DNA from: Hyaloraphidium curvatum SAG 235-1
Taxonomy: Eukaryota; Fungi; Monoblepharomycota
NCBI GenBank assembly: GCA_025558095.1
Contig: JAIVFI010000041.1
Location: 248,001 to 312,000 of the forward strand
Reading direction: 5' to 3'
DNA: 64,000 nucleotides
Shown here: piece by piece, positions 24,208-62,436 of the stretch
Layout of the letters: every line of letters begins with the position of its first letter
Position numbering within the stretch: position 1 is the stretch's first letter
Made by a program: the position numbers and the translations under genes
The notes under the pieces: model-generated
Seen by the model: the letters and a program-made list of their open reading frames with translations, nothing else
Databases searched by the model: none
What the model was told of the DNA's origin: nothing

Positions 24208-25680
24208 TCACGACGGACAGGTGCTCTCCACCGTAATCACCACCCCCGCCCCCCGCAGCAGCCCCCACATCCCCACCGCGACCGTCAGCAGCGTCGCCAC
24301 CGCCCCCCTCGCCGCGCCCTCCCTCACCTGCGACCCGAACAGCCTCGCGCCCCCGGCGTCGGCCTGCGCGATGCACGAGGACAGCAGCGCATCGCGGGCG
24401 CGCAAAGCCGAGGCGATCGCGGGGGAGAGGGAGGGGTGCCGCGAGATGAGGATGCGCAGCTTGTGCCGCGCGGCGAGGCACGCGGCGCGGTGGTCGAAGA
24501 TGCCCGCGTTGCGGGCCGACGCGGAGCCCAGGGCGACCGAGAACGAGAAGGCGTGGAGGAGGAGGAAGCCGGCGATCCAGGCGGGGACGCAGCCGCCCGT
24601 GACGGCGAAGGCGGCGAGGCCGGCTAGGGCGGTGGCGGCGTGCATGAGGGTGTAGGCGGAGAGCGGGGCGGCGACGGTTTCCGAGGTCCATTCGGCGCCG
24701 ACCAGGGAGTGCAGGACGGAAAAGGTTTCCTCGGCTTCGAGGACGCGGAGGGCGGTGTGTTCGTCCGGGCAGGAGGCGGCCGCGGTGCAGCGATCGAGGA
24801 GGGAGGCGAGCGCCGCATTGAGGGCGCGGTTCCGCGTACGCCGGACGAAGCCGGCGGACGGCCAGCTGACCCAGAGGTCGAGGAGGGAGAGCATGCCGAC
24901 GATGTTGCCTAGGATTCCGAAGCAGAGGGCGAGGGCGCCCAAGATGGCCGTCCACCAGGTTGTCCAGAAGGGATTGCCCAGGGTGACGAACGCCGAATAC
25001 ATGGTTAGGAAGTCGCAGACGACGAAGGTCGCGGCAGTGTTGAGTACGGGTACGGCGATGCGCATCCAGCCAAAGGTGAGGACCAGCTTTCCGCCGCACG
25101 AGGGACCTGGGCAGGGGCAGAGCGGGTCCGAGGCGTGGTGCTTGAACAGGTCCCCCGTGGGCTCCCCGCACGCCGTCCCATCCCCGCCCGTGGTGCCCTT
25201 CTCCAAGTTGTGCGCCGACGTCGCCCGAGTGGCCTGTGCCCACCTCGCCGCGCCGGCCATAGGGTGCCAGGACATGTCCCGACTTTCCCAGGGCTCGTTC
25301 CACCCGCCGCCCAGCAGGGCCACCCGCGCGAGCTCCAGCGCGGCTATGACTGCAAGTACGGCGACCCACGTGTCCCTGGCAGGCTTCGAGAAGGCGGCCG
25401 CGGCCTCGGGCAGGCCGAACGCGGCGGCCGAGGGGACCGCAACGATGAGGATGCTGTGCAGGAAGTACGTTGGGCGCGCCGTTACACGTTTCGGCACTTT
25501 AAGCGAGGCCGCGGTCGGGAGGCGCAGCAGAGGAGGCAGTGCGGCGAGGAATGTTTGCAGGTCGAACGGCTCGCGAGCCGCCGCGCCCGGGTCGTCCTCG
25601 GGCGGCGGCACCGGCAGCAGCGCCGCCCATTCCGCGGGGGTGAAGCGGATCGGCGATGGTATCGGAACATGAGGATCCAT
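24208..25680 (-). CDS. 7-TM membrane protein, family member A (candidate GRL/DUF3537-like 7TM ion channel)
   Basis: About 7 hydrophobic segments, HHASDPLCPCPGPSC, GGCVPAW and C-terminal ARLFGSQVREGAARGAVATLLTVAVGMWGLLRGAG. Paralogous to the genes at 56559 and 60952. Confidence 0.75.
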   Translation of the reverse strand: MDPHVPIPSPIRFTPAEWAALLPVPPPEDDPGAAAREPFDLQTFLAALPPLLRLPTAASLKVPKRVTARPTYFLHSILIVAVPSAAAFGLPEAAAAFSKPARDTWVAVLAVIAALELARVALLGGGWNEPWESRDMSWHPMAGAARWAQATRATSAHNLEKGTTGGDGTACGEPTGDLFKHHASDPLCPCPGPSCGGKLVLTFGWMRIAVPVLNTAATFVVCDFLTMYSAFVTLGNPFWTTWWTAILGALALCFGILGNIVGMLSLLDLWVSWPSAGFVRRTRNRALNAALASLLDRCTAAASCPDEHTALRVLEAEETFSVLHSLVGAEWTSETVAAPLSAYTLMHAATALAGLAAFAVTGGCVPAWIAGFLLLHAFSFSVALGSASARNAGIFDHRAACLAARHKLRILISRHPSLSPAIASALRARDALLSSCIAQADAGGARLFGSQVREGAARGAVATLLTVAVGMWGLLRGAGVVITVESTCPS

Positions 25681-25955
25681 CGGCTCGGCCCGTTGGAGGT
25701 CGGCCGGGCCCACCAAACAGAGGCGAAAACGGATGACGGCCGGGTGGCGGCGACGAGCTAGTGACGTGAACACCAACGACCTCCACTTCAAGCTGCAGCC
25801 GGGGCCTTACGCACGGAAGCCGGAAGCAGGTCGGCTTTTTATCACTACACGGGCAACAGGACGCGTTTCGGACCCCGATTCGCTCCGCGGTGCCCCCTCC
25901 TTCTCTCGCGACTGCCCAAGGGCTCCCGCGTGTCTCCCAGGCCTCCTGCCGCACA

Positions 25956-26630
25956 ATGACCACCAACCCAACCTCTTCCTCCCCTCCCGACGCGTCTTCC
26001 GACCCGCAGTCCCTCGCCGCCTCCTCCCTCCGTCGCCTCGGCCACGCCCTCGCCTCCCGCTCCCTCCCCCCCGCCGCCTCGCTGTTCCTCGCGGCGCAGC
26101 TGGACTCCCTCGCCGCGTCGATCGCGCACCACCCCCCGCGGACGACGCAGCCGACGCTTCCGACGGGCCGCGAGGCGGAGGAGGGGAGGGGGTTCCCGTT
26201 CGACGCGCACTCGATCGTCGCCGGGCCGAGGAACCCGTTCGGCATCGGCGCGGGCTACCGCCGGCGGGGGGACACCTGCGTCGCGGCGTGCACCTTTGGC
26301 CGGGCGTTCGAGGGGCCCGCGGGGAGGGTGCACGGGGGGGCGGTGGCGATGGTGGTGGACGAGTGCACGGCGGCGGCCGTGAAGATGCTGGGGTTGATTG
26401 CGTTCACGGGTAGCATGTCGGTGCGGCTGCTCAGGGCGGCACCTCTGGACGTGGAGGTCGAGTTCGTGGCGAGGGTGGACAGGAGGGAGGGGAGGAAGCT
26501 GTTCGTGTCGTGCGTCGGGAAGGGGCCCGAGGGCGTGTTTGTCGAAGCGGAGGCGGTCTACATCGAGGCGAAGCCGGCGGGATCGGGTGCCGGGGCAGGG
26601 GCGGGAGCCGACGCGATGGCCAAGCTGTGA
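25956..26630 (+). CDS. Hotdog-fold acyl-CoA thioesterase (PaaI/THEM4-like)
   Basis: Motifs FEGPAGRVHGGAVAMVVDE, FTGSMSV and REGRKLFV. Confidence 0.9.
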   Translation: MTTNPTSSSPPDASSDPQSLAASSLRRLGHALASRSLPPAASLFLAAQLDSLAASIAHHPPRTTQPTLPTGREAEEGRGFPFDAHSIVAGPRNPFGIGAGYRRRGDTCVAACTFGRAFEGPAGRVHGGAVAMVVDECTAAAVKMLGLIAFTGSMSVRLLRAAPLDVEVEFVARVDRREGRKLFVSCVGKGPEGVFVEAEAVYIEAKPAGSGAGAGAGADAMAKL

Positions 26631-26930
26631 CGGCCTGTGGCACGACTGCTCGCCGGGCAGTCCCGTCCTCGTAGCCGAGGCCGGAGCGGCGGACTCGGTT
26701 TCGCGGTTGCTGCCAGGGCATCGGGCCAGGCCGGGCCATCCACCCCAGGAAACCGGTCACAGTAGATCAGGAGACACTAGAATAACTAGATTGATGCTGC
26801 TTCCTCTTCCTTGCCGTGGATGCGGGGGTTTGCCACCGCGGCAAACCTGTAGCCCCAATTGGCGCATTCGCGCCCACCGGCTCCCGGAACAACCGTTGCC
26901 GAACACCCCGCCCCCGCTCACCCCGCCGCC

Positions 26931-28793
26931 ATGTCCATCGCCGTCGCCAACCCGTACGTGTGGTGGCACCCCGCCGCCGAGTCGCGCGCGCCGGCGTCGC
27001 CGCCGGAGCTGCCCGTTGTCATCGGCGTCGCCGACGTGCGGCAGAAGGGCGTGCCGCTCGACGAGGCCAAGGAGCCGCTGGCGCTCATGGCCGACGCGGT
27101 GCGCGCGGCCGCGGAGGACAGCGGCAACGCGGCGGGCGTGCTGGCGGGGCTCGACTCGGTGTCGATCACGTCGACGTGGACGTGGTGGGTGGCCGCGCTC
27201 CTGTGGACCACGGGATGGGGGCTAATGGCAGCAGGGAGTACGCCGACCTGCCCAGCCAGCTCGCCAGGGCGCTCGGCAAGGACCCCGACGCCATCTCGCG
27301 GCGCGAGTACACCTCGCACGCGGGCAACCAGCCCGGCAGGCTGTTCGACGACGCGTGCAAGAACGTCGCAGCGGGCAGGGTCCGCATCGCCGTGGTGACG
27401 GGCGGCGAGGCGCTCGACAGCCTGCAGAAGTTCGCCAACGCGAGGAGGCAGCCGCCGTGGACGCCGTCGGCGCGCAAGGTGGCGGGGACCGTGGGCAGGC
27501 CGGGGGAGGGGATCCAGGGGGACACGGTGCACATCCGCCACGGTGGGCCGCCTGCCTGCCTGCCGGGCTGCAGGCCTCCGGAGCTGATTCCTCGTGCCGT
27601 CTGGCAGGCGCCTTTGCACCGATCCACTTCTACCCGATGGTCGAGAACGCGCTGCGCGCGCGCCGCGGGCAGTCGTACGCCGACAACGAGCGCGAGTCGG
27701 CCGAGCTGTACGCCGAGTTTGCGCGCAACGCGGCCAAGCTCCCCGCGGCGTGGAACCACGGGTCGATCAAGACGCGGGAGGAGATCCAGACCGTGGGGGA
27801 GAAGAACAGGATGATCTGCTACCCCTGTGCGTTTTCTCGCCGCCGCGGAAGAATAAGTCATCCCGCTGACCTTCGGTGCAGACCCCCTGCTCCAGAACGC
27901 CTTCAACACCGTCAACCTCGCCGGCGCCGTCATCGTCACCTCGCTCCGCGTCGCACGCGAGCTCGGCATCCCCGACTCGAAGCTGGCCTACCCGCTCGGC
28001 GGCGCCGGCACCTCGGACAGCGGGGACTACCTCCTGCGGCCGTACTACGACCGCAGCAACTCGATCGCGCACAGCCTGGACATGGCGATGAGGGTGTCCA
28101 ACGTGACGATCAAGGACATCGACGCGCTCGACATCTACAGCTGCTTCCCGATCGTGCCCAAGCTCGCCTGGTGGGTTCCCGCGGCGTGCACCCCGGGCCG
28201 ACCGGACTGACCGCCCCCGGGCACGCAGCATCCACCTCGGCGTCCCCATCGTCAACCCCCCGATCCCCATCTCCATCTGCGGCGGCCTGACCTCCTTCGG
28301 CGGCGCCGGCAACAACTACTCCCTGCACTCGCTCGCCGAGATGGTCCGCCGCATCCGCGCGGGCACCACCAAGACCGGCCTGGTGCTCTGCAACGGCGGC
28401 TACTCGACCTACATCCACGTCTGCGTGCTCGGCAGCCGGCCCAACGGGATGGAGTACCCCTCGGGGACGTACCTGCCCGCGCTGCTGGACGCGCCCAGGC
28501 CGCCGGCGCTGGTGGAGCGCGTGGGCGCCGAGCCGCAGCCGTGCTTCGTCGAGACCTATACGGTCGACTACGACCGCAAGGGCAAGCCCGTCAGGCTCAT
28601 CGCCATCGTGCGGATGAATTCCGCGGGGAGGGAGCGCGCGCTGTGCAACGGCCGCGACGCGGCGGCGATACAGGCGGCGGTGCGGGCCAGGGACGAGGGG
28701 AGGGAGGTGGTGGGGATGCGCGGGTTCGTGGCGGGGGACGGGAAGGGGCGCAACGTGTTCTGGTTCGCCGAGGGGGAGACGGCGAGGATGTGA
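26931..28793 (+). CDS. Thiolase-like protein type 1 (paralog of 5693-7553), 5 exons
   Basis: Motifs HAGNQP, YPMVENA, NRMICYP, DIYSCFPIVPK, GGLTSFGGAGNNYSLH and VETYTV. Introns at about 27185-27234, 27543-27608, 27826-27881 and 28170-28228. Confidence 0.88.
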
Positions 28794-28998
28794 GGGGGGG
28801 GTCCGGGCCGGTCGTGCCGTGCACCCCCGGGGAAAAAGGCGGTCTTGTAGTTGCTTCGCAGAGTGGACCCACGCATTGGAAAAATGGGGAACTCGGCGAC
28901 GCCTTCGGGACCTGTGGGACGCGCGGCCGGATGGGTGCGGACACCGCACTGTGGCTGGGGACGTTCCCTGATTCCTGACTCCCGGTCGGCCGGCCGCC

Positions 28999-31470
28999 AT
29001 GTCGACGCCCGATGCCGACGGCGAAGGCGGGACGGCGATGACCCGCGGACGGCTTTCGTGCCTCGTGGGTGGCGGGCGTGCTCTGCGGGGAGGCGGCGTT
29101 CTGACTCCCCGCCCTCCGCGCTCTTGGACCCCGACGCCCCGCCCCATCGCGCCCCTCTGACGGCCCGCCGCATGTCCGCCGCATGTGCATGTGGTTTGTT
29201 TGCTGTCCTGTTCGCAGCCGTGCCGCTCGCGCAAGGTGCGGTGCCTGGGCGGCCAGCCGTGCGAGGGCTGCACGCGGCGCGGCCTGCAGTGCGAGTACGC
29301 GGGGCGCCAACCAAGAGGGAAGCGGAAGGCGTCTGCGCGCGTGCCGACGTTCGAGGAGCTGATGGAGATGGCGGCGCGCGCGGCGGGCGGGGCGGTCGAG
29401 GCGGCGGCCGCCGTGCGGGGCGCCAGCTGGTCGTCGCCGCCGCCGCAGGGCAGCCCCGGCTCGGCGTCGGGCTCGGCGTCGTCGCTGACCTCGCTGGGGC
29501 CGCACACGCTGCTGGGCCCGCACGCGCTGGCCGCGCCCGCCGTCGACCCCGCGCCGCTGATGCCGTTCCCCGACGAGGACCTGCCGCTGCTGTCCTCCGA
29601 GGGCTTCAACTGCCTCATGCTGGCGTACTACCGCCTGCCGCAGCACCCGCGGCCAACCGTGTCGCCCGTGCTGCGCCAGCTGGGCCAGCACCCGCTGCTG
29701 GTCGCATCGCAGCTGTGGGCCGGCTGCCTGTTCTCGATGGACGACGCCTTTGCCCGCCTCGCGGGCATCCCGCCCGCCATGCTCGGCACCGCACCCGGCG
29801 ACTCGCGCGCCCCGCTCTCCCTGCCCGCGCTGTCGCGCCAGCTCGGCCGCCTGGTGCGCAGGCTGATGGGCGCGGAGCTGCCGCGCATGCTCGACGAGCT
29901 GGCCTGGACCGAGGGCGCGCAGGGCGCAGGCGCGGCGTGGCCCATCTCGCCGGGCAACCTGGCCGTGCTGGTGGCCATCGCCACCGTGCCCAGGGTGCTG
30001 CTCAAGGTCGGCCAGCCCGCCAGCGCGGCCGCGCTGCTCCGCACGGGGCTGGACCTCGTCAGGAGGCTGGGGCCGCACCTGACCTTTGCGCTGAGCGTCG
30101 AGGCCGGCGCCGACGTGGACGACACCACGGTTGCGGCACAAATCAGGCAGTCCGAGTGGATGTTGCAGCAGCAATGGGTGCGGGCCGCGTGGTCCATCAT
30201 GGGCATGGAGCTGTGGGTTCATCGCTCGCCAGTTGCCTCTTCCACGAGCTGATCCATCTCCCTGTGCGCGTTTCGCAGCGGCCGATGCGGCCTCCAGCAG
30301 AAATCCGCCCTCCTCCTCTCCCCCCTGCGCGACGTGCCCAACCTGCGCCTGCCCGCCCCGGACCACCAGGTCATGCGCCGCTCCTGGACCATGTCGATCG
30401 CCGACGGCCCCACCGGCTCGGGCGACCTCGCGATCGCCGGCGTCCCCGCCTCCCCCCCGCCCCACCCCGACGACACCTTCGGCGAGATCCTCGGCTGCCT
30501 CTTCCTCCCCTACGGCTCCCCCGAATCCCCCGGCGGCTTCTCCTCCCGGCGCCGCGCCATCCTCTCGCGCCAAATTTCCGGCATGCGCGACGCCGGACCC
30601 GTGCCCCTCCGCCTGGTCACGCTGCACGCCATGGCCGCGCTCTCCGAGTACAACCTCTGGCTCTCCGGCGAGGGCCTGTCGATGCTCGATGCCATCGTCG
30701 CCGACGGCCTGGCATCCAAGGACCCCGCGCTGCTCCGCGAGCGTGCGGTCGGCGAGGCCGTGGGGCGGCGCAGGGCGCTGCTCGAGGGCCTGGCGGCGGT
30801 CGAGGCCGCGCTGCCGGGCGAGGTGGCCGCGCGGCACGAGGCCGGGGACTTCATGGGCCTCGTCGGGTATGCGGAGCGCAACTGGGCGCCGGCGACGGTG
30901 CATTCGGCCTCGGGACTGTTCGAGGGCCTGGTGTGGCTCGCGGCGGCGCAGATCCTGCTCCGCTCGCCGGAACCCTTCTCGGACCGCGCGCTGCACGCCG
31001 CGCCGCCGGCCGATCCGGCGGCGGGACGGCCCGACCCCGTGGCCCCGTGGCGGTTCTGGCTCTCCACGCCCGACTTTGCCGCCGCCTCGCGGCAGGCCAT
31101 CCTCGTTTCGCGGTACGCCCGCGCGTGCACGCTGTTCCTCCGGGGCGACCTCGCGCCCGTGGACCCGTCGCTCGCGCCGGTCCCGCTGGCGTCGCCGCTG
31201 CTCCCGTACGCGCTCGTCTACGCGGGATGGCTGCACGCCGTGTCGCTGGGCTTTTTGCGGGGGTCCCCGGCCGCCGCGCAGGTCCGCGAGGACCTGGACG
31301 CCTGCGCGGCGCTCCTGTCGGCCAACCACTGGCGCCAGGTGGATCCGCTCGTCAAGGTGCTGGTGAGGATGTCGGCGATGGCGGGCGGGGGGCCGACCGA
31401 GGCGGAGCGCGAGGGGCTGGTGCTCCTGCGCGAGGCCGGCGGGGAGAGCGACGCCGAGACGCTGGTGTGA
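28999..31470 (+). CDS. Zn(II)2Cys6 fungal transcription factor
   Basis: Exon 1 ends ...RLSCL and splices (intron 29066-29217) to PCRSRKVRCLGGQPCEGCTRRGLQCEY. A second intron lies at about 30213-30278. Confidence 0.88.
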
Positions 31471-32243
31471 TCCGCGGGTCGTGTGGCTGTTGCTGTGTTG
31501 CGCCGCGAAGGTGCGCGCCGAATATTTGCTTGCCGTGTTGTCAGAGAGTGTGCATCAATCGTAAGGTTGCGCCGGCGAGAGTTTGCATGCTCCGGCGGTG
31601 GCCGTCCGCGATCCAGGTCGAATCGAGGCGTGCTGGTTGCTGCCATACAGGAAGGACGGTTGCATCCGGTCGGGCAGGTTTGGTTGTCCTGTGTTTGGCG
31701 GGGGCCGAGCTGCCAGACCAACCCCGGAATGCGATAAGTCCGTTCGCCGTCCGTCCTTCAGTTGCTGGCTGCTGTGCAGGATCGAGCGGTCGGAAGGGAC
31801 AGGGATGAGGGGGATCTTCCACTCGCGCGTTGGTCCTCCGCCCAGAAGCCCGGACCGACATTCCAATTTCTCCGCCCGGAAGCCCGGAGCCCGGCACTAT
31901 TGTTCTTTGCCGTCCGATGGCCGATCCGGCCGAGTCGGCCGTTAGTGGAAGCCGAGGCCGTGCCACGGTGGCCGAGTGCCGGTCTCCCGTACGCAACGAT
32001 GCATCACTGCTTCCAAACGTGCGTTACTTGTTCCATGGAAGTTGATCCGCACAGAACCAGCCAGGGCCGCCGTAGATGGCCGGGCCTGGCGTCGGCGGAT
32101 AATCGTGGGAGTTCCTTGCGGGAGGCAGTGCGCGCAGCGTTACGTCAGGGTGAGCCACTTTCTTCCTCCCCCACGGCAAGCGCGAAATCTCCCCGGAAAG
32201 AGCCTCCCGGGCGAGCCGCGCCTTCGGAACGACCCCTCAGCCG

Positions 32244-34212
32244 ATGTCCGCGTCGCCCGCCGCGGGAGCGCCGCACCGCCGCGTCGCCCACGTCGCCGCC
32301 GCGCTGTCCCCGCCCGCGATGCGCTGCGGGCCGCTGCCGCCCCCGTTCCTCCCCGCGCTGCGCAACACGCCCGAAGTCACCGCGCCGGTGCGGCTCGCGG
32401 TGCAGGGAACGCTGCCGCCGTGGCTCTCGGGGGTGCTCTACCGCGCGGGCCCGGGCACGTACGAGATCCCGCTGAGCCCCGAAGCCGCGAAGCGCACGGG
32501 CAAGGAAACCTACCGAATATCGCACTGGTTCGATGGGCTGTCGATGATACACCGTTTCGAGATCGCCCCCGGCGGCGAGGTCACCTACCGCTCGCGCAGC
32601 ACCGCCAAGGGCGTCGAGGAGCTGATCCGCGCCGAGGGCGGGACGTTGCTCTCCTTCGGGCAGGACCCCGACCCGTGCGTGTCGCTGCTGGGTCGCTTCA
32701 TGACCTTTTTCTCCACCGGGAGGCGCGCGTACGCGGCCCGCGGGGACCCGCCCGCCGCACGGCCCGACGGGCGCAACATCGGGGTCACCATTTCGCCCGA
32801 TTACCCCGTCCCCGGGGGCCCGGGCTCCGCGCCCGAGAAGCGGGGCGTGCCGCGGACATTGGTGGTCAAGACGGACCAGAACGCGCTGCAGACACTGGAC
32901 CCCGTGACGCTGGAGCCCCTGGGGACCTATGGCTACGAGGACTTGAACCCGGACGTGGCCAAGGGGCCGTTGAGCGCCGCGCACGCGCAGGTCGACCCCC
33001 GGACGGGGGAGCGGGTCAATTTCGTGGGTCTCTCGCCGCGCGAGGCGGTATCAGCTCACCTCGCGTCGCGCAGACCATGTCCCTAGGCCCGTCACCAAAG
33101 ATGAGCATCCTTTCGACGACGCTGGACGACCCGCGCGGCCGCATCCTCGCCACCTTCACCCCGCCTGCCACGACCTACATACACAGCTTCGCCATGACGG
33201 ACCGCTTCGTCGTCGTCCCCTTCTGGCCGTACCATTTCGGCACCGGCATGGGAATCCTCTGGTGGGTGCATTGCTTGCAGCCCGCCTACCCGCTCCCCCC
33301 GCTGATCCACGTCCCTCCCGGCCTGCGCAGGCACCAGAACCTCCTCGACGCACTGACTTGGGAGCCTTCGAGGAGCACCGTATTTGTCTTCATCTCCCGC
33401 AAGCACCACCGCGTCGTGGCCCTGTACTCCGCCCCACCCGCCTTCTGCTTCCGTACGCCCTCCCACGCGCCCTCCACCCACCTCCATCTGACTCGTGCTC
33501 CCCCCAGACACCATCTCCGCACACGACGCCGCCAACGGCGACCTCGTCCTCGACCTCGTCGGCCACCCCGACGCCTCCCTCGTCCGCGCCACCCGCCTGC
33601 GGTCCATCGAGCTCGGCGAACCCCGGGCTGGGGACGTACGGAGGTACGTGTTTCCCGACCCGGGACGGTTCGACCTTGCGGGCAGCGGACCGCCGGCGAG
33701 GGTCAAGGAGCGGGTGGTCCCGCGGATCCTGCATCCCGAGGCAGGGGTGGAGCTGCCCCGTGTGAACCCCGAGTACGCGGGGAAGGAGGGGCTGACGTGG
33801 GTGTACGCGCTGGCGGAGCGGGAGGACGAGGACGGGAGGAGGCTGATGTTTGCCGGGATCAAGAAGTTGGTGGGTCATCGGACGCGGGCACCGAGTGCAC
33901 GCGCAACGCCGCTGATCTGCGCATCCCCGTGGCGAACAGTCGCTCAAGGAGCCCCACACCGCAACGATGTGGTCCGAGCCCGGGCTCTACGCCGGCGAAC
34001 CGGTCTTCGTGCCCCGCCCCGGCGCGACGGACGAGGACGACGGCGTCCTGCTCACGGTCGCCTTCGACGCCGCGAGGACGTCGTCGGCGCTGGTGGTGCT
34101 GGATGCGCGGACGATGCGCGAGACGGCTCGGTGCGTGTTTGGGGGGGAGGGACACGTGGTCGGGTTCGGATTCCACGGGGCGTTCCACGGGATGGGGGAC
34201 AACGAGTACTAG
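32244..34212 (+). CDS. Carotenoid cleavage oxygenase (RPE65/CCD family)
   Basis: Motifs GVLYRAGPG, HWFDGL, ELPRVNP and EPVFVPRPGATDEDDGVLL. All four Fe-ligand His are present: SAAHAQVDP, YIHSFAMT, spliced FCFH|TI and GFHGAF. About 4 introns. Confidence 0.92.
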
Positions 34213-34290
34213 GAGAGCAGCGTGTACCGCGGCCGGCAATGTAGGTTCTGCACACCATCTCTCTGGAGACGATTTGCACGCCGGGGTGCG

Positions 34291-35946
34291 CTAGAACGGG
34301 TTCCACCACCTCGCCCACCGCACCAGGAACTCGGGCACCCTCCTCCCCTCCACCTCCCCCCCCATCGTTCCCTCTCCCCTCTTCCCTTTCCCTCCGTCCG
34401 CACCGTTCGGCCCCCCCGCGACCCACTTGGCCCCCGCCACGTCGTCCCGCGCGATCCAATCGAACACGTCGTCACCCATCTCGTCGGTCCCAGAGAACGG
34501 CCCCTCGATGATGGGGTCCGTGTGCGTCTTGCCCGGATAGAGCTTGCACGCCACGTTGGAAAAGATGGATGCCAGGGCGCCGGCGAACTGCGTCGAGGAG
34601 GACGAGGCGACGGACTTGTCGGCCGTCCCGTGGAGGAGCAAGACGGGGATCCCCGTCCACGCTTCCAAATCCTTGTCCTGCGCCGCGAGGCTCGCGAGCG
34701 TCTGGCCGTGGCGCCGCGAGCGCACCGCCCTGCCAATCGCGAGAGCCCGGTGCGACGGCGAGTACCCCCTGAGGTCGCCGTGGAAGATGTCGAGGACGAT
34801 GCGGCGGTTGAGCCCCTTTTCGAGGAACTTCAATCCGTGCAGGGGGACGTTGTAGGGGCCCGAGATGCCGATGTAGGAGCGGGGAGGGGGGTACGACGGA
34901 TACGTCTCCGCGGGGGAGAGGAACTCCTCGCGGTCGTCCGGCACAGGACTCCGCGAGATGTGGTACAGCGGGTCGTGCTTCAAGGTCGCCTGCACGTCCG
35001 GGGGCAGGTGCCGCGCGAGCTGGTCGAGCAGGCTGCACGCGCTCAGGTGCGCCCCCGCCGACTGGCCGACCAGGTGCAGGTTCGCGGGGTCGCCGCCGAG
35101 GGAGCCCGCTTCCGCGGCGACCCATTCCACGGCGCGGGTGACGTCGCGCAGCATCTCGCCGCACCGGCCCTGCGGGTAGTTGCGGTAGTCCGGCACGACC
35201 ACGACGATGCCGCGCCCCGAGAGGGAGAGGCCGAGGAGGGCGCCCCAGGCGCGGTAGCCGATGATCCATGCGCCGCCGGTCAGGAAGACGGCGATGGGGT
35301 ATCCCCTGTTCGGGGAGCCGGGCACCGCGTTGGGCGGCGCGACGCCGGGCGGGGGGAGGTAGATGTCGGCGTAGTTCCGCTCCCTGGCGCCGTATCGCAC
35401 GCCGCGGCGCACCCGCGGGCTGCGGTAGTACTCGACCATCACGGCGAGGAAGCCGGGCAGCAGGAAGAAGGTGAATGCCAGCAGCGCAAACAACTGGCCG
35501 AGCCATAGCCGCGCGAAGCCGAGCATTCCCGCCAGCCGCCCCGCCAGCCGCGCGACGACCGACACCTCGCGCACGACCTCCTCGGCGCGCCACTGCAGAT
35601 CGAGCAGGCGGTCCTCGACGTCGTCCAGGAACGGCGAGGTGACGTGGAGCAGCGTCGACAGCGACCGCTTCCGGCGGTGCTCGCCGGAGCCGGGCCGCGC
35701 GCGCGGCATCTCGGCCGGCGTCTGCAGCAGCCGCGGCGACAGCGGCGGCGGCGCGCCGAACACCGGCGGCGGCGTCGCCCACCTGGGAGCGTTGCCCCTC
35801 CGCACGGCGCCCTCTTCCTCCGGCCCCGCGACCAGCGTGCCCTGCGAGTCCCGCGCGGACCGCTGCGGCCAGCGGTCCTCCTCGTCCTGCATGCTGATCG
35901 CGGGGAGGTCCGCCGCTGGGGATTCGTCGTCGCCGGCACCTGTCAT
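34291..35946 (-). CDS. Isoprenylcysteine alpha-carbonyl methylesterase-like alpha/beta hydrolase (ICME-like)
   Basis: Motifs FLLPGF, FLTGGAWIIGYRAWGALLG, PDYRNYPQG, GQSAGAH, LHGTAD, KTHTDP and C-terminal NPF. Confidence 0.88.
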   Translation of the reverse strand: MTGAGDDESPAADLPAISMQDEEDRWPQRSARDSQGTLVAGPEEEGAVRRGNAPRWATPPPVFGAPPPLSPRLLQTPAEMPRARPGSGEHRRKRSLSTLLHVTSPFLDDVEDRLLDLQWRAEEVVREVSVVARLAGRLAGMLGFARLWLGQLFALLAFTFFLLPGFLAVMVEYYRSPRVRRGVRYGARERNYADIYLPPPGVAPPNAVPGSPNRGYPIAVFLTGGAWIIGYRAWGALLGLSLSGRGIVVVVPDYRNYPQGRCGEMLRDVTRAVEWVAAEAGSLGGDPANLHLVGQSAGAHLSACSLLDQLARHLPPDVQATLKHDPLYHISRSPVPDDREEFLSPAETYPSYPPPRSYIGISGPYNVPLHGLKFLEKGLNRRIVLDIFHGDLRGYSPSHRALAIGRAVRSRRHGQTLASLAAQDKDLEAWTGIPVLLLHGTADKSVASSSSTQFAGALASIFSNVACKLYPGKTHTDPIIEGPFSGTDEMGDDVFDWIARDDVAGAKWVAGGPNGADGGKGKRGEGTMGGEVEGRRVPEFLVRWARWWNPF

Positions 35947-53881: not shown

Positions 53882-53993
53882 CGTTCAGCGGGCGGGAGCG
53901 GAGAGCACGCCCTCGGAGACTGCAGGAGAGGCTCGGCCCGACCGTACCGGGTCGGAACCTCCGATCCCTTGGCCAACAAAGTCCGCCATAAAA

Positions 53994-55021
53994 ATGTCCC
54001 CCTTCGTTCGGGCCGTGTTAGGAGCCAATGCGCTGCTCGACGCGTGGCTGGCGCTCGACCTGCCGGGCTCACGAGCAAACGTCGGCGGCTCCTTCCCCGG
54101 GCTGTCGGCCGACGGCGTCCGCACGCTTGAAGCCTCGCTCGCCGCTTACGCGCTGATCCGGGGATACGCCGCTCTCGACTTCTCGCCCGGCGCAAGGCGA
54201 GCAGCCCAGCTGTCTTATGTCGCGGAGATGCTGCTGCCGGTGCTGCTGAAGCAGTACTTTAACAAAAAGGCGCTGGCGAACGTCGTGGCGCTGCCGGCGG
54301 TGCTCATCGTCGCCATCGAGCTCGCCGGGCGCGCGGCGTCGCGGCTCGCCAAAGACGCCCATGCCGTGTCGACGCCGGCCGCGCTCAGGGCGCTATACAA
54401 GCCGCCGTCGCAGCTGGTCCTCAAGAAGGTGCGTCAAAGCAACGTCGAACACTCAACGATGTCCAACCGCCCGCCTTCCACCAGGTCGCAAAGTCGCTGG
54501 ACGCGAAATCCACCGCCTTCATCTCCAACTCTCCCTTCTTCATCCTCGGCACCGTCGGCCCCCGCGGCGTGCACGCCACCCCCCGCGGCGACCCCCTGGG
54601 TGCCGTGCAGGTCCTCTCCCCGACCACCATCGGCTTCGGCGACCGCCGCGGGAACAACCGCCTGGACGGGCTGCGCGACATCGTCGACGACCCGCACGTC
54701 GCCCTGCTGTTCCTGATCCCTGGTGTAACCGAGACCCTGCGCATCAACGGGCTCGCGAGGATCACAACGGACCCGGCGCTCCGCGCGCGGTTCGAGTGCG
54801 AGGGCAAGCAGCCCACGACCGTGGTCGTTGTGCACATCTCCGAGGTCTTCATGCAGTGCGCCAAGGCGCTGATGCGGTCCAAGCTGTGGGGGGAGAGGAA
54901 GAGGCCGGAGGACGTGCCGACGATGGGGGAGATGATCGAGGAGCACATGAACGGGGAGGTCAAGGCGGTGGACGTGGACAAGATGATTACCCCGGAGTCG
55001 ATGCGCGAGACAATGTACTGA
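53994..55021 (+). CDS. Fusion of an N-terminal membrane domain and an MSMEG_1061-type pyridoxamine-phosphate-oxidase-like FMN-binding domain
   Basis: Three to four hydrophobic helices, then LRALY..P..LVLKK|, SPF..LGT, TPRGD, DRRGNNRLD, LLFLIPGVTETLRING and QCAKALMRSKLW. Intron at about 54429-54485. Confidence 0.85.
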
Positions 55022-55149
55022 GTGGGCTTTTGGGCGAGAGATTGATTATGTGTGCGGTGATTGAGAACGGCTCCACTCGCTAATGCCCTAACTCTGCAAA
55101 GCCCTGAACTTCGGCCTCGTAGCTTCGACGACGGTGAAGCCGAAGAGCT

Positions 55150-56406
55150 CTACATCGACCACGGTTCCGTCATCTGCGCCTCCGGCACCCACTTGACGCC
55201 GATCGACTCCCAAAAGGCCACCTCCCTCCTGTACAGCGGGCACTGCGCATCGCTTTCGGTCACGTCCTCGTCCAGGGTCCCCAGCAGCTCGGCGATGCCC
55301 GCCCGAGCGAACCATTCGCGCATGCGGCCGCGCCTTTCGTTCTCCTTGGGCCAGTACGCGCGGGAGAGCGGCCTGTACCGGCGGAGCACGAGGCGCTTGA
55401 GCCCGCGCGGCTGGTTGTCGGAGTTGGTGCTGACCATCTCCACGTCGGAGAACTCGACGTCGGCGAGTTCCAACTCCTCCACCCCGAGCCGCGTGAGCAC
55501 GTTCCAGTCCGCCAACCTGATTATCGGGGTGCGGAAGGACGACAAGCGTGTGACGGTCATCCCGTGCTTGCCGCTAAAGATCAGAACGTCAGGCCACCCG
55601 CAACCGGAGACATGATAGACCTTTCCGAGAATGGCAGGATGCCAATCCAACTTTGCGAGGTTCGGGCGTTCGAAGTGGATCCTCTGCAGCTGATTGCCGC
55701 TGCCTGCAAGCATCGCTTTGATTCCAGATTCGTTCCGCACGGTCCCGTTTGGCGCGTCATCGACACAGAGGACGAAGTCGGCGACGGACTGCGGGAAGCC
55801 GGAAACGCCGCCAAACGCGTCCGCGGCGTCCCTCTTGAGGCGCAGCCTCAGCCATTTGAGCTCACGAGCGTCCTTGAGCATTGTCCAAAGGGTGGAAGTG
55901 ACCTTGGCCCCGTGGAGCTCCATGTCCAGCCGCTCCACGCCCGGCAGAATCTTTTGAAGCACCTTGAGTCTCTTGGTCGACCACTTGATGCCGGGAGAAA
56001 TCCTCAACTTGCGAACGAGGCGCGTCGAGGAGTCTCCATGGAAGGTGAAACGAGGCGCGTCGAGGAGTCTCCGTGGAAGGTGAACCCCCGCGCGAGGAGC
56101 TCGAGCTTCTCCTCGCCAAAGTCGGCGCGCGGCCCGAGCACGAGCTCCCCCCGCCAGGCCCCGCAGGCCGAGGACGTAGCACGCCTTGCTCGCAAGCATG
56201 AATTCGAGCAGCGTCGCCTTCCAGCCGCGGTGGGCGAGGCTATCCACTACGACAGACAGCAGTTCGTTTGGGAGGGTTGGCGCTTGCACCGGCGGGTCCT
56301 CGTTCGCGGCGAGCACCGGCTGCGGCGTGCCGGCAGGACCAGCAAGTGTGGAGACCGCAGCAGCATCGGCGGAGCGCGTTCTGGCAGTCTTCTTTCCGCG
56401 CGGCAT
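55150..56406 (-). CDS. F-box-like / LRR-like hypothetical protein
   Basis: F-box-like start LPNELLSVVVDSL and LxxLxL-type segments. The ORF is intact but contains an internal frame-shifted segment. Confidence 0.6.
   Translation of the reverse strand: MPRGKKTARTRSADAAAVSTLAGPAGTPQPVLAANEDPPVQAPTLPNELLSVVVDSLAHRGWKATLLEFMLASKACYVLGLRGLAGGARARAARRLWRGEARAPRAGVHLPRRLLDAPRFTFHGDSSTRLVRKLRISPGIKWSTKRLKVLQKILPGVERLDMELHGAKVTSTLWTMLKDARELKWLRLRLKRDAADAFGGVSGFPQSVADFVLCVDDAPNGTVRNESGIKAMLAGSGNQLQRIHFERPNLAKLDWHPAILGKVYHVSGCGWPDVLIFSGKHGMTVTRLSSFRTPIIRLADWNVLTRLGVEELELADVEFSDVEMVSTNSDNQPRGLKRLVLRRYRPLSRAYWPKENERRGRMREWFARAGIAELLGTLDEDVTESDAQCPLYRREVAFWESIGVKWVPEAQMTEPWSM
56015..56084. repeat. 35-bp tandem duplication (2 copies, 1 mismatch)
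   Basis: ACGAGGCGCGTCGAGGAGTCTCC(A/G)TGGAAGGTGAA occurs at 56015-56049 and 56050-56084. Confidence 0.95.
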
Positions 56407-56558
56407 GGTCGCCGCGCCGAGTCAACGTTGGCGGTGTGTACGTTGGCGGCCGCCGCGTCTCAAAAGCAGTTCGAGGGGTTTGACGAAGCGCCCGTCGGCT
56501 CGCCGTCGCCAATCTCTAGCGACAGACAACGAAAGGAAGAGCTTAGGATTGAGCGGCG

Positions 56559-58195
56559 ATGACGGACGCGTCGGCGGCGTCCGCCGGGGCCGAGGCCGAC
56601 GAGCCCCGGGCGGCGCCGTTTCAACTGACTCCGTCGGAGTGGGCCGCCGTGTTTCCGCTTCCCCGCTCTGGAGACGCAGCGGGACACGCGCCCTTCTGCG
56701 ACCGGCTGGACGGCCCGGCGGGAGCCCCGAGCGGGCTTGAAAAGGCCCCGCCAATCCCGTCGCACGCCGAAATGGTCGCTGCCCTGCACGAGTCCGGCCT
56801 ACCTTCGAGGCCATCGAGAGGCTTGTCTACGACGCGTTCTGGCTCCATCGGCCGGACTCCGTCCTGGTCCAGCATCTGGTCCTTTTCGCGATCCTCCTCG
56901 CCCTGATCTGCGCTATATACCCGCTGAACGACGGCTCATTCTCCCCGAAGGACATTGCGGCCGGCATTGCCGCTTTCGTCACCCTGCACCTGCTCTGGGT
57001 CACTCTTATGCACTTCTGGTACTGGCTGGCCCTTGGCAAGGGCGATCGCTCGCTGCTGGCCGCGGCCGCGGCACCCCTCGTTAGGTGGCACGACCTCTTG
57101 GTTTGTTCCGACAACAAGACCGCGCCAAGCCCCTTGCTGGCCCACGACCCCGCGGATAAGCTCTGTACCTGCGCGTCGTGCTTCATCAGGGCGGCGGCAG
57201 CGGCTCCCTGGGAGCGAATGGCCCGGGCGCTGGCCCTCCAGACCTTCAACAGCGTGGGGATTTTCTTTACGGTTTGGACGCCGCTGGTCTACTTTGGGGG
57301 GAGGTTCTGGCCACTCTGGTGGGGCCTGTTGCTCGGCATCCTTTTCGGTTGGTTTGCGTGAGAACCGCCCCATGCAAGTTTCGTTAACACTGCACCGCAC
57401 AACAGCCGTCAGCTTGGTTGTCTACAACAACGTCGCTCTCCCCCTCGTGCGGTATTCGCAAGCCAGCATCGTTTTGACCAACCTTCGCACGCGCATGATC
57501 AACCGTGCCGCCAAGCTCGCCCTCGCTTCCTTGCTTGAGCGCGCGCGGCAGGACCTGCTCGCACCTCCTGCCCCCAACCGCTCGCCCAGGGAGCCTGCGC
57601 CGGAGCTCTACACAGTCCTGCATGCTGGATTCGTCGCCGAGTGGCATGAGTCCAGAGGGGCAGCCCCCCCATGGATCCGTTTCGTCGCCTTTCTGAGCCC
57701 TCTCGGCCTCTTGATTGGCACTGTGATCTTCATCGTGCGTGTGCGCTGTCGTTTGCCAACCCAGTGCCCGCCTCAAACCCCCCGATACAGGCCTCCGGCA
57801 CCTGCGTCCCCCTCTGGATCGTCCTCTTCGCGTGCTCCAATGTCTGGCAGGTTTTCAACGACCTCCCCGTCGTCAACAACCAGATCCACTCCGTCGCCGC
57901 CCTCTTCGCGGACGCCCGTCGTGCCCTGGGCCGCCTCCTGGCTCAGGCCGCCGAACTCCCGCCGCATCCGGACCGCCCCGCCACCGAGGCCCGCCTGCGC
58001 GCGCACGAGGGGCTCCTGCGTGCCTGCGGAGAGATCGACGGGCTCAGGGCCACCTTTGTCGGGGTGCCCGTCACGTGGGGCCTGGCGAAGACGTTCCTGG
58101 TGACGGCCCTCACGCTGGCGATCGGACTGTGGAGCTTGTTGAGGGGAGCGGGCGTGTCGTTCACGGTGCAGTCGGTGTGCCCGGTGCAGGCATGA
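56559..58195 (+). CDS. 7-TM membrane protein, family member B (candidate GRL/DUF3537-like), possible frameshift near 56790
   Basis: Motifs FQLTPSEWAAVFP, HDPADKLCTCASC, GTCVPLW and ATFVGVPVTWGLAKTFLVTALTLAIGLWSLLRGAG. Introns at about 57348-57405 and 57735-57790. Confidence 0.7.
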
Positions 58196-58431
58196 GGCGG
58201 TGGAACCAGGGCCCGCTGGCGATTGTGTACAAGCATGCTACCCTCAAAACAAGGACCTTCCATCTGGGTCGACGGATCGGGCGACGACGGCATTGCCAGA
58301 TTGCTTGCCGTGACTCCCATTGTCGAGGGCAATAGCCACGGCGTCTGCTTTTCCCCTCGTCTTCCGTGGAAACGTCTGACGGCCACAGCCACGCAGAGTG
58401 TCTCCCGGGCGTCAGGCACCCCACGCTCGCC

Positions 58432-60742
58432 ATGGCATCGCTAGAGGCCATTGCAGCGCACCCGGAGCAGTACTCTGCAGAGGAAGTCGGGGCTGTCCGC
58501 CGGCGCTCGGAGCTGCAGCTCGGCGTGCGTGTGCCGAACTCGGCGCGGCCGGGCTACACCGAGATCGTCCGGCACCCCGGCACGCCCAATGGGCCCCAGG
58601 ACTGGCCGCCGTTCCTCGCCAAGAATCCCGACCAGCCGCGGACCGCGTGGCAGGCGTGGCAGCGCGGCAGGTCGCGCGCCAAGGGCACCGGTCCGGCATT
58701 CGGCACACGCACTCCCAACGCGCCGTACGTCTGGGAATCATACGATGACGCCACGCGTCGCGCTGTCGCGCTCGGCTCGGCCCTGGTCACCGTCTGCGGT
58801 CTGCAGCCGTCGCGCGGCGCCGCGGGCATCCAGCTGGGCAACGGCTCAGGATGGTACACCGCCGACATCGCCTGCGTCGCGTTCGATCTTGTCTCGTTCC
58901 CGCTGTACACGAGCGCCGACGACGACTTCAGCCAGCACATCATCAACCTCGGCGAACTCACTGTGGTCTTCACCACGGCCGCCAACGTGCCGCAGATGGT
59001 CCGCCTGGCGACCAAGGGCGCCGTGCCTTCGTTGAAGCACGTCATTGTGCACGGACCGCCCGCGGATCCGCAGCAGGTGGCGGCCGGAAAGGCAGCAGGC
59101 CTCGTTTTCCACGCCTACGAGGATCTCGTCAACGCCGGCCTGTCCCGCACCCTGACGCCGGTGCCGGCGACGGACCCGTCGCGCCCGTGGAGTGTGATCA
59201 GCACCTCGGGGACAACCGGCAAGCCAAAGGGCTCGGTGCTCACGCACGCCAATCTGTCGTGGATCATCGCCGTCGCCGGCGAGATCTTTGAGCACCCGAC
59301 GCCAGCCAAGGAGCTGTTTCACAGCTATCTTCCGACCGGTACTGCCGCTCGCAGCTCTTCCGACGCATTTGCTAAACATTCCCACCTTCCCAACACAGCA
59401 CACGTCGGAGACCGCTGGTTCTGCTGGGTATACATGGCCCACGGCGTGCCGCTCTCCTTCGGCACCCCACTCGACCTCTTCTCCGACATCCAGCAGAGCA
59501 AGCCGACGCTGATGCTCTTCGTGCCCCGCGTCATGAACCGCGTCGTCGGCCAGATCAAGTCCATGGTGGACGCCGAGGGCTCCGACGCCAAGCGCGCGTT
59601 CGAGGAAGCCTATGCAGAGAAGCGGAGGATGTTGATCCGCGACGGCGTGGTGAGCTCCTCCACCAGGCACGACCAGCCGGGGGGCGTGCTGCACAAGTTC
59701 AGGATGATGATGGGCGGCAGGCTGTATGCGCTCACGGTCGGCGCGGCGGCGATCGACGGGGCCATGTTGGAATTTGCGCGGATCGTGTTTGGTATCAAGG
59801 TCATGGAGGGGTTCGGCCAGACCGAGATCATGGGCGTCGCCACGGCGTGCGGCCTGGACAACCCCTACGTCCCTTTCGGCGGCACCGTCGGGCCGCCGGT
59901 GAAGTTCATCGACGTCAAGCTCATGGATGTCCCGGCGCTGGGCTATCACGCAACCGACAAGCCGTTCCCGCGCGGCGAGGTGTGCGTGCGCGGGCCGAAC
60001 GTGTTCAGCGGGTACCTCCGCGAGCCGGACAAGACGGCCGAGACGATCGACAGCGACGGATTCGTGCTCACGGGGGATGTTGGCGAGCTGCTGCCGGACG
60101 GGTCGATCAGGATCATTGATCGGAGCAAGAATGTGTTCAAGGTGTGTTTCCAAAGTCGCATTGTGCGCAGTGTTTCTCACGCGAGGTCGGGCACCTACCA
60201 GATGATGCAAGGTCCGGTTGCGCCACCGGCTTCGCAGCTTGCGGTGCGTTGATGCTAACTCGTTCCACCGTCTGTCACAGGCGAGTTTGTCGCCCCGGAA
60301 AAGATCGAAGCGGTCCTCCTGCGGTGCCCGTGGCTCGCGCAACTCTACGTGCACGGCGAGCTCCTCAAGCGCTTCCTCGTTGCCGTCGTCGTTCCCGATC
60401 CGGAACGCGTCGCAGCGTGGGCCAAGGAGAGGGGCAAGACGGGCGGGCTCAAAGAGCTCTGCAACGACGCGGAGCTGCGCGCCGAAGTGCATGCGGCGAT
60501 GGTCGAAACGGGGCGGGTAAATGGGCTGCTTGGATTCGAGATCCCAAAGGTTGGCTCTTCAACGTTCCCGGTTCTGGTACAGTCGGCTGATACCCATGTA
60601 GGACATCGCGTTGCACCCGGATCCCTTCACGCCAGAGGAAGGGCTGACGACGCCGTCGATGAAGAACAAGCGGCCTCAGCTCAAGGACAGGTTTTCGGCC
60701 GCAGTGAAGAGGCTGTACGATGGAATTCCCGACTCGGGTTGA
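58432..60742 (+). CDS. Long-chain fatty acyl-CoA synthetase (ACSL/FAA-like)
   Basis: Motifs STSGTTGKPKG, SYLP..H, EGFGQTE, PRGEVCVRG, TGDVG, IIDRSKNVFK and GEFVAPEKIE. Three introns. Confidence 0.95.
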
Positions 60743-60951
60743 CGTGACGTGCCTTGGGGCTAGCTGTGGAATCGTTGTGTGTCTCGAATTAAGCTCAGTG
60801 GACTGCATCTACGACAGCAACGCGATCAGGAGCCCGATCGTGGATTGAGAAAGGGTGTATGGTGCAGTAGTCTACTTGGCGCCCGTGTTGCCAGGTCAAG
60901 ACAATTAAAGAACCGGAACTACATAGATAGAAAAGGAAAGCGATTTCTCCA

Positions 60952-62436
60952 ATGGACCGGCTTTTCTCTGCTGCCGAACAGCTGGCGCTGTTTCCCCCTG
61001 CGATGGCTCCACCGAAGCGCCTCAGTTCGCGGCTCGGGGTTGCCGACGGCGCGTCGTCGGGCTCACCGCTCACGTCGTCCGCCCTGCTGGCCGGCCTGGA
61101 GAGCCGCCTGCTGCGCGGTACGGTCGCGGTGCAGCTGGCCGTAGCGCCGGCCTTCGTCAGTTGGCTCGTACAGGTGCAGATGGCCGGCGGATTGCTCCTT
61201 TGGATCCCGGTCGGCGCGTGGACCGTCATCGCGGGCCAAAACGGGCCGTTCTCGCCGCGTACAATCGGCGTCGGCGTCGCCTGTGTCGCTCTGTACTGGA
61301 GTGTGTGCGTCGCTATGGCATTCAGCGGGGCCCTTTTCCGCGGACGCTTCTTCGTGCCGCGCGCGGCGTCGGACCTCGGCGCCCACCCGCTGGCGGTCTT
61401 TGCGCGGTACAACCAGCTCGTGCGTGCCACGCCTGAGGAATCCGGCGGGAAGGACGGCGCCGCGGGGTCGGAGGGCATCGTGCGCCACGTCGACGGGGAC
61501 CCCCTGTGCCCGTGCCCGGCGAAGGCCTGCGCCAGGAACCTCGAAGGCCGCGCGGGCACCCTGCGCCTTTTCGACCTCATCCTTCGGGTGTTGTTGGTCA
61601 GCACAGCTATATTCTTCATGGGCTATACCCCGGTCGTCACCCTCGCTGCCGCGACCTGGTCCACGCCGTGGGCTGCCGCGTTTACGGCCGCCTATGTCGC
61701 ATGGTTGCAAGGCGCATCGGTTGCCGCATGCCTCGCGTCGTCATCGGGAAGCCTACCCGCCCTGGAGCTCCAGCAGCGGCTGCAATCCCGGGCGTTGTCG
61801 GACGCTCTGTCGGAGCTGCTGGACCGGTATGCCGCCGCGATCGAGGATGCATCCCGCACGGACGGAGATTTAAGAAGCACGGTCTACCGCCTGCCGACGG
61901 AAGAATCGTACGAAGCGCTGTGTGAGAGGCTCCAGACTTTTCGCGAGGGCCGCTTCTCCACCTTTTCCGTCTCGCGCAACCTCATCATCAGCTACTTCCT
62001 CGTGCCTTTCGTGGCTGGCGTCGCCGCCATCGCCGCGGGCTCGTGCGTCCCGCTGTGGTGCCCCCTCGTCCTGCTCTTCTTTTTCTTCCTCGCCTTGAGG
62101 GACCTCCTCGCCGTCGCCGCTGCCAACGCGCAGGTATCCACCACGCAGTCCCTCCTTCGGCGGGCGCACCGCGAAGCCGAGTCCATCCTCGCCCGCGCCT
62201 CCGCCACGCCGGGGGGACCACCCCCTGGCCCCGCCGCCGCACTGGGCCACCACGCGGCGCTTCTGGCCGCCTACGCCGGGGACGCTTCGGCGGTCGCGAG
62301 ATTCCTCGGGTTCGCGGCGGATTGGGGAAGCGCAAGGGCGGTCGCGGCCACGCTTCTCACCGTTGCCGTGGGACTGTGGTCTGTGCTGAGGTCCGCGGGG
62401 GTGTACCTGACGCCGGACGTTGCTTGCTGGGCTTGA
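60952..62436 (+). CDS. 7-TM membrane protein, family member C (candidate GRL/DUF3537-like)
   Basis: Seven hydrophobic segments, HVDGDPLCPCPAKAC, GSCVPLW and ARFLGFAADWGSARAVAATLLTVAVGLWSVLRSAG. Intronless. Confidence 0.78.
   Translation: MDRLFSAAEQLALFPPAMAPPKRLSSRLGVADGASSGSPLTSSALLAGLESRLLRGTVAVQLAVAPAFVSWLVQVQMAGGLLLWIPVGAWTVIAGQNGPFSPRTIGVGVACVALYWSVCVAMAFSGALFRGRFFVPRAASDLGAHPLAVFARYNQLVRATPEESGGKDGAAGSEGIVRHVDGDPLCPCPAKACARNLEGRAGTLRLFDLILRVLLVSTAIFFMGYTPVVTLAAATWSTPWAAAFTAAYVAWLQGASVAACLASSSGSLPALELQQRLQSRALSDALSELLDRYAAAIEDASRTDGDLRSTVYRLPTEESYEALCERLQTFREGRFSTFSVSRNLIISYFLVPFVAGVAAIAAGSCVPLWCPLVLLFFFFLALRDLLAVAAANAQVSTTQSLLRRAHREAESILARASATPGGPPPGPAAALGHHAALLAAYAGDASAVARFLGFAADWGSARAVAATLLTVAVGLWSVLRSAGVYLTPDVACWA

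Follow-up and report, generated by a model that had tools for sequence, protein, structure and literature searches.

Introduction

Seven-transmembrane ion channels (7TMICs) form a superfamily that includes the odorant receptors (Ors), gustatory receptors (Grs) and Orco of insects, the gustatory receptor-like proteins (GRLs), the plant DUF3537 proteins and PHTF. They are recognised by cytoplasmic extensions of transmembrane helices (TM) 4 to 6 and by a seventh helix which is split into TM7a and TM7b (Benton & Himmel, PMC9998090). A sequence motif in TM7 is diagnostic, not definitive; it is lost in the GRLs of Spizellomyces and unrecognisable in DUF3537 (PMC7746228). Outside animals, genomes are reported to have from one to about a dozen 7TMICs: a single GRL for each of two species of Spizellomyces, at most six proteins in protists and 4-12 DUF3537 proteins in plants (PMC7746228), and none of these non-animal 7TMICs has a demonstrated ligand. 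The screen which defined the PHTF-like Class-B proteins had fungal records only from Chytridiomycota and Blastocladiomycota (bioRxiv 10.1101/2023.08.30.555482). We have now analysed a stretch of 64,000 nucleotides, contig C41:248001-312000 (the window), from the assembly of Hyaloraphidium curvatum (31.9 Mb, 55 contigs, GC content 62-73%), an atypical fungus without a flagellum which has been assigned to Monoblepharidomycota (PMC8371127). A preliminary description of the window proposed that three of its genes, here called genes 1, 2 and 3, are a family of 7TMIC-type chemoreceptors. Our analysis indicates that they are probably old, dispersed paralogues in a very large family of the Hyaloraphidium lineage with the 7TMIC fold, whose proteins of about 490 aa have an inner N-terminus and an outer C-terminus (N-in, C-out) and which we propose to be tetrameric ligand-gated channels.

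Results

A large family of divergent genes

The three paralogues were found where the preliminary description had placed them, genes 1 and 3 as open reading frames (ORFs) and gene 2 as four colinear pieces matching the family profile (Table 1). Genes 1 and 3 can be aligned over their full length with 28% identity (E 1e-21). The family had been thought to have three members, and this number proved far too low: we counted at least 135 distinct loci on 39 contigs. For this count all six frames of the genome were searched with each of three queries (gene 3, gene 1 and a member from elsewhere), and the results, 63-91 matches per query, were merged; every search scored 83-87 of about 700 first-look candidates, and 135 is thus a lower bound. 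When 1.84 billion representatives of clusters formed at 50% identity were searched exhaustively with HMMER, we found 308 clusters at E <= 1e-3, 214 of which remained at E <= 1e-10. When ten of the clusters were sampled at even spacing, eight were "hypothetical proteins" of H. curvatum and the other two derived from a Logan assembly. Since 308 clusters were found and eight of the ten sampled belong to H. curvatum, the true number of genes in this species is probably about 170-250. The proteins deposited for H. curvatum carry names of the type "hypothetical protein DFJ74DRAFT_...".

In most of the genome matches the reading frame is open over the full length, and stop codons occur in few of them. 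The ORFs are mostly 470-560 aa long, and the copies are 25-45% identical to one another. Their tree resembles a star, and its terminal branches are long, with a median of 0.88 changes per site. Gene 1, gene 3 and the gene most closely related to gene 2 lie in different clades of this tree, so that the three copies in the window are old dispersed paralogues and not local duplicates.

In 17 cases, two of the 135 loci are neighbours separated by less than 10 kb. We considered whether genes 2 and 3 had recently been duplicated in tandem and ruled this out, as their nearest relatives are on other contigs. The loci are depleted in the centres of contigs, with 60% lying no more than 150 kb from a contig end, where 43% would be expected (Kolmogorov-Smirnov p 3e-7). 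A strong subtelomeric location was nevertheless ruled out: 16% of the loci are within 50 kb of a contig end and 15% would be expected there.

Members also occur on short eukaryotic metagenome contigs, and a related species was found in the Logan run SRR26194948. Its 48-kb contig has flanking genes with about 68-72% DNA identity to H. curvatum contig C35, and the family member on it (positions 10001-11569 of the stretch examined) adjoins genes syntenic with C35. The 10 kb of C35 searched on the far side of the conserved flanking gene (230000-239999) has no counterpart of this member; the best match to it anywhere in the H. curvatum genome is 32% identical. The lack of a positional counterpart together with this low identity suggests that the family turns over by birth and death of genes.

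Topology and predicted structure

The preliminary description had noticed about seven hydrophobic segments, and a Kyte-Doolittle profile averaged over 72 members has exactly seven, which match the helices of the AlphaFold2 (AF2) models. The mean number of lysines and arginines is 32.6 on the side of the N-terminus and of intracellular loops (IL) 1, 2 and 3, compared with 1.7 on the side of extracellular loops (EL) 1, 2 and 3 and the C-terminal tail. By the positive-inside rule this asymmetry predicts an N-in, C-out protein, which is the opposite of G protein-coupled receptors (GPCRs). The mean lengths of IL1, IL2 and IL3 are 76, 73 and 64 aa, those of EL1, EL2 and EL3 are 9, 8 and 5 aa.

Two AF2 models were built from the alignment of paralogues, using different alignment orders, one for gene 3 (pLDDT 88.4, pTM 0.90) and one for gene 1 (pLDDT 87.3, pTM 0.87). 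According to DSSP the gene 3 model has, after TM4, a kinked helix at residues 268-302, followed by two long helices, 319-363 (TM5) and 369-417 (TM6), with a loop of five residues between them. Then come a cytoplasmic helix 425-442 (TM7a), a beta-hairpin 450-456 and a helix 458-481 (TM7b). The helices of the gene 1 model follow in the same order.

Comparison with known folds

The preliminary description had recommended that a monomer be predicted and compared by Foldseek, and when the gene 3 model was searched in this way against 350,542 PDB chains, the first 13 places were all taken by insect Grs and Ors, with weak statistics which are considered in the Discussion. In a structure comparison with 48,161 PDB representatives, the Or, Gr and Orco structures were the top seven matches of one model and the top six of the other. 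These matches align about 90% of each target, whereas the remaining ones cover only the cytoplasmic bundle. The superposition on the N-in Or and Gr structures is colinear, in agreement with the predicted topology. Neither model has a GPCR among its listed structural matches, and no transporter among the matches was aligned along the whole model. Could the fold have been copied by AF2 from known receptor structures? PDB entry 6C70 did not appear until August 2018, when the training cut-off of AF2 had passed, and the fold was therefore not taken over from Or or Gr structures.

The proteins of genes 1 and 3, with 490 and 494 aa, are within the length range of 7TMICs (about 350-500 aa). They have seven transmembrane helices, a predicted N-in orientation and intracellular loops longer than the extracellular ones, and the Ors and Grs are their most similar structures in the reverse search. 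In the models, DSSP also assigns the extensions of TM4-6 which form the anchor and the split of TM7 into TM7a and TM7b. The outcomes which had been named beforehand as speaking against a 7TMIC, namely a GPCR-like N-out topology, fewer than six or seven transmembrane helices or an unrelated fold, were not seen in these predictions. A protein-language-model search, for which the structural model is not needed, had DUF3537 (0.92), 7tm_7 (0.87-0.89) and DUF267/SRR clusters among its closest named neighbours; the recognition value of this search was low and we treat the result as a lead only.

Conserved residues

Conservation was examined in alignments of 72 and 80 members, and residue numbers are those of gene 3. 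Six residues are invariant (H179, C186, C188, C193, C365 and N392) and at least 90% conservation was found for D183, R276, R280, A281, L323, G453, R462, T470, R480, G483 and C492. All motifs listed in the preliminary description are real and are conserved over 72-80 members: R276, R280 and A281 after TM4 (each at least 93%), Y320 and L323 ahead of TM5, the TM5-TM6 loop G-S-C-[IV]-P containing C365, N392 after TM6, and the segment R462..T470..GLW..L479 R480 G..G483, which is the last helix. TM7b is the most conserved helix, with a mean column entropy of 1.63 bits compared with 2.6-3.0 for the other transmembrane helices.

Two further motifs had escaped the preliminary description. One is H-x3-D-x2-C-P-C-x4-C between TM2 and TM3, in which D183 is conserved in 96% of 72 sequences. 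The cluster H179/C186/C188/C193, on the predicted cytosolic side, probably binds zinc. The other is a cysteine not more than four residues from the C-terminus (C492, 97%). The model places strand 365-367 as well as strand 485-487 on the outer side, and a disulfide between C365 in the outer TM5-TM6 loop and C492 in the outer tail is probable.

We also observed that the predicted cytosolic N-terminus contains, within about the first 50 residues (60952-61104 in gene 3, 25528-25680 in gene 1), a conserved F-x3-E-W-L-A-L-F-P followed by D-P-A...P-L-T, with P15 conserved in 99%. To our knowledge this peptide has no counterpart in Ors or Grs. It could be a motif for trafficking or for the binding of a partner.

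Gene 2 and the neighbouring genes

Table 1. Positions of the described features in the window; residue numbers refer to the protein named in the row
Feature	Position	Strand	Basis and remarks
Gene 1	24208-25680	-	intronless, single 490-aa ORF; stop codon 24208-24210
Gene 1, last TM helix (TM7b), residues 454-477	24250-24321	-	DSSP of model; holds conserved R458, T466, R476
Gene 1, His/Cys motif in IL1 (H181, D185, C188, C190, C195)	25096-25140	-	H and three C invariant in 80 sequences
Gene 2	56559-58195	+	four colinear family-profile matches in two frames
Gene 2, coding piece 1, frame of the ATG, family N-terminal motif	56559-56800	+	profile 4-64; colinear with paralogue P0110 residues 24-77
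Gene 2, frameshift of 1 nt	56799-56806	+	profile 64 to 66 over a gap of about 5 nt; P0110 residues 77 to 79 colinear across the break
Gene 2, coding piece 2, TM1-TM4, including H..D..LC.C....C	56801-57357	+	profile 66-253, E 3e-36
Gene 2, intron 1, 55 nt, GTGAGA...CAG	57358-57412	+	frame restored by its length; profile unbroken at position 253
Gene 2, exon with end of TM4, post-TM4 helix, TM5	57413-57734	+	profile 253-364; 48% identity to P0110
Gene 2, intron 2, 56 nt, GTGCGT...CAG	57735-57790	+	frame restored by its length
Gene 2, last exon with Cys loop, TM6, TM7a, TM7b, stop codon	57791-58195	+	profile 360-490, E 2e-46; 65% identity to P0110
Gene 3	60952-62436	+	intronless, single 494-aa ORF; NCBI annotation without name
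Gene 3, His/Cys motif in IL1 (H179, D183, C186, C188, C193), candidate cytosolic zinc site	61486-61530	+	conservation in 72 sequences; cytosolic side predicted from distribution of lysine and arginine
Gene 3, predicted cytoplasmic "anchor" region including TM5, TM6, TM7a	61753-62277	+	DSSP of model and conservation
Gene 3, TM7b, residues 458-481, candidate pore helix	62323-62394	+	lowest column entropy of the helices; short beta-hairpin 450-456 precedes
Gene 3, C492 in short outer C-terminal tail, candidate disulfide partner of C365	62425-62427	+	97% conserved; outer side in model; putative pairing
Na+/H+ exchanger, two ORF pieces	19006-21838	+	PF00999 and weak CHX17_C match
RPE65-type carotenoid oxygenase fragment	31976-34291	+	ordinary gene
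AMP-binding, acyl-CoA synthetase-like gene	58366-60249	+	PF00501, E 9e-50; between genes 2 and 3

Gene 2 was examined piecewise, by profile matches and by reading the DNA of the junctions. Its frame changes where there is no room for an intron and P0110, its closest paralogue, is colinear through the break, and gene 2 is therefore frameshifted in the assembly. The frameshift is either a true disabling mutation, making gene 2 a young pseudogene, or an indel error of the assembly. Several other members are interrupted near profile position 250, within TM4 and approximately at the site of the first intron of gene 2, and split matches of this kind were seen at C26:502604/503358, C24:526415/527177 and C15:613279/614035. 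There may be a subclade which shares an intron at this position.

The neighbours of the family genes in the window (Table 1) are ordinary genes unrelated to the family. The C-terminal part of the AMP-binding gene seems to resume in another frame (60349-60747), so that an intron is probable there. A 418-aa ORF starting with ATG on the minus strand (55150-56406), divergent from gene 2, has no Pfam match. It is perhaps a further orphan gene, perhaps a chance frame in GC-rich DNA.

Discussion

The evidence from the models points to the fold of the 7TMIC superfamily for these proteins, and we propose a channel with a chemosensory function on this basis. If the proteins are built like Orco, MhOR5 and Gr43a, four subunits would be held together by a cytoplasmic anchor bundle made of the helix after TM4, the extensions of TM5 and TM6, and TM7a. 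A stripe of small and polar residues on TM7b (T467-T470-G474-S477) would line a central cation pore, which could be opened by a ligand bound in the variable bundle of TM1-TM6. A cytosolic zinc site in IL1 and an outer disulfide linking the TM5-TM6 loop to the C-terminal tail would be additions specific to this family. The many divergent copies might then give a non-motile planktonic fungus a broad repertoire for sensing chemicals.

Several observations weigh against this proposal. A resemblance of sequence to DUF3537, 7tm_7 or 7tm_6 could not be found: the Pfam hidden Markov models 7tm_6 (PF02949), 7tm_7 (PF08395), Trehalose_recp (PF06151) and DUF3537 (PF12056) matched 0 of 72 members at E <= 10, and the family profile found no Or or Gr among the PDB sequences. 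The suggested check with PF08395 and PF12056 gave no match in the H. curvatum genome either, which does not prove that such genes are absent from it. Membership of the 7TMICs is thus supported at the level of the fold, where two AF2 models, the best PDB matches, the topology, the loops and the split TM7 agree, and not at the level of sequence. The Foldseek statistics are weak (E 0.02-0.7, TM-score 0.21-0.45), and the best matches of a fold search in the ESM Atlas had TM-scores of 0.23 or less and belonged to unrelated families. In place of the TM7 motif (T/S)Yhhhhh(Q/K/E)(F/L/M) the family has the consensus T-V-x-V-G-L-W-S-x-L-R, in which only T470 (99%) fits. TM2-TM5 are most variable in their cytoplasmic halves and not in the outer halves, where the ligand pockets of insect Ors are, so that a simple odorant pocket fits poorly. 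A tetramer predicted without an alignment from four copies of residues 263-494 scored 0.00; its own fold was uncertain, and it is evidence neither way. Lastly, H. curvatum is not flagellated (PMC8371127), therefore chemotaxis cannot be the use of such receptors, and sensing would have to serve something else.

Could these proteins share the 7TMIC fold, whether through common descent or through convergence, and yet be something other than ligand-gated chemosensory channels? They might act in internal membranes, as has been proposed for the PHTF-like Class-B proteins, or in the fast-evolving recognition of self and non-self or of parasites. An invariant cytosolic His/Cys motif, like the conserved peptide at the N-terminus, speaks for partners inside the cell, the outer halves of the helices are not the most variable parts and the host does not move; moreover, for the member from the related species there is no orthologue in the corresponding position and the best match is only 32% identical, as is seen in birth-and-death families. 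Against this, conservation peaks on TM7b, which is the pore helix of Ors and Grs, and more than a hundred divergent copies are typical of receptors. As the function of PHTF is likewise not known, a role of this kind does not offer a positive alternative, and we consider it unlikely, though it is the strongest of the competing explanations.

We think it very improbable that the structural resemblance is just a generic match of helical bundles or an artefact of modelling, with the family being an unrelated seven-helix transporter, GPCR-like receptor or enzyme. Such an explanation would account for the weak Foldseek E-values (0.02-1) and for the lack of sequence support for the 7TMIC link in the Pfam models and the PDB profile search, and the alignments used for modelling did contain paralogues only. 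Nevertheless, two models with different alignment orders gave the same ranking, all Or, Gr and Orco representatives came out on top among 48,161 structures with about 90% of the target aligned, there was no GPCR in the lists and no full-length alignment of a transporter, an N-in orientation is the reverse of what GPCRs have, and the unusual division into TM7a, hairpin and TM7b is present. Even harder to accept is that the ORFs are not functional genes at all. The frameshift in gene 2 would agree with decaying copies spread by a mobile element, and a GC content of 63-73% makes long spurious ORFs common. However, copies which are only 25-45% identical nearly all keep full-length frames and the invariant residues, the star-like tree has long terminal branches (again the median of 0.88) and the ORFs are annotated as proteins by NCBI. 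Conservation structured in this way and the high confidence of the AF2 models require selection on the protein.

We therefore return to the large 7TMIC-fold family as the explanation which we prefer. The sequences and models suggest a group of sequence-orphan 7TMIC-type proteins with motifs of their own and with a copy number that appears unprecedented outside animals. If a fungus has well over a hundred intact and diverged copies, this fold can undergo large receptor-like expansions outside animals too, and the family would be the largest such repertoire that we found described outside them. A bolder version, which we put forward tentatively and regard as somewhat doubtful, is that about 200 functional ligand-gated 7TMIC channels make up a chemoreceptor repertoire of insect size which arose independently outside animals, has its own zinc site and disulfide and serves sensing without motility, perhaps of nutrients, of algal or bacterial metabolites or of kin. 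The family would also provide many natural variants for asking what non-animal 7TMICs do, and being intronless and about 1.5 kb long, the genes should be easy to express. It also illustrates that structure prediction from an alignment of paralogues can be the only way to assign a fold to a large share of the "hypothetical proteins" of one genome.

How does the family compare with the systems described so far? We searched the literature for receptors and gene families of Hyaloraphidium and found no description of it. The IL1 of PHTF is much longer than that of the family. A long loop between TM2 and TM3 is a feature of the PHTF-like Class-B proteins (bioRxiv 10.1101/2023.08.30.555482) which the family shares, IL1 being its longest loop with a mean of 76 aa; here the two are likened by description. 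Class-B proteins also resemble the family in their structural Z against Orco (about 12), whereas no large expansion has been described for them (bioRxiv 10.1101/2023.08.30.555482). The plant DUF3537 proteins are likewise non-animal 7TMICs with long intracellular loops and are the nearest named cluster of the language model (0.92), but PF12056 matches neither the members nor the genome, and plants have 4-12 copies (PMC7746228). The chytrid GRLs SpunGRL1 and SpalGRL1 of Spizellomyces also come from early-diverging fungi, have the same predicted topology and have mostly lost the TM7 motif, with one of four positions kept (PMC7746228). These GRLs are single-copy and were found by sequence similarity to GRLs and DUF3537, whereas the present family lacks this similarity and numbers at least 135 copies; we set the two apart by their descriptions.

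From the insect Ors and Grs the family differs in having no detectable sequence similarity to them, in the lack of the TY.....QF motif and in its fungal host. Its EL2 has only about eight residues, its IL1 is long (about 76 aa) and bears an invariant H-C-C-C, and it has a conserved pair of outer cysteines and a conserved N-terminal motif. In other respects the insect receptors and Orco (7tm_6/7tm_7; PDB 6C70, 7LIC, 8V00, 8JM9, 8VC1) share its plan. They too have seven transmembrane helices, an N-in orientation and very short outer loops, cytoplasmic extensions of TM4-6 and a TM7a-hairpin-TM7b arrangement in which TM7b is the most conserved part, and they too are encoded by a large and divergent repertoire of genes.

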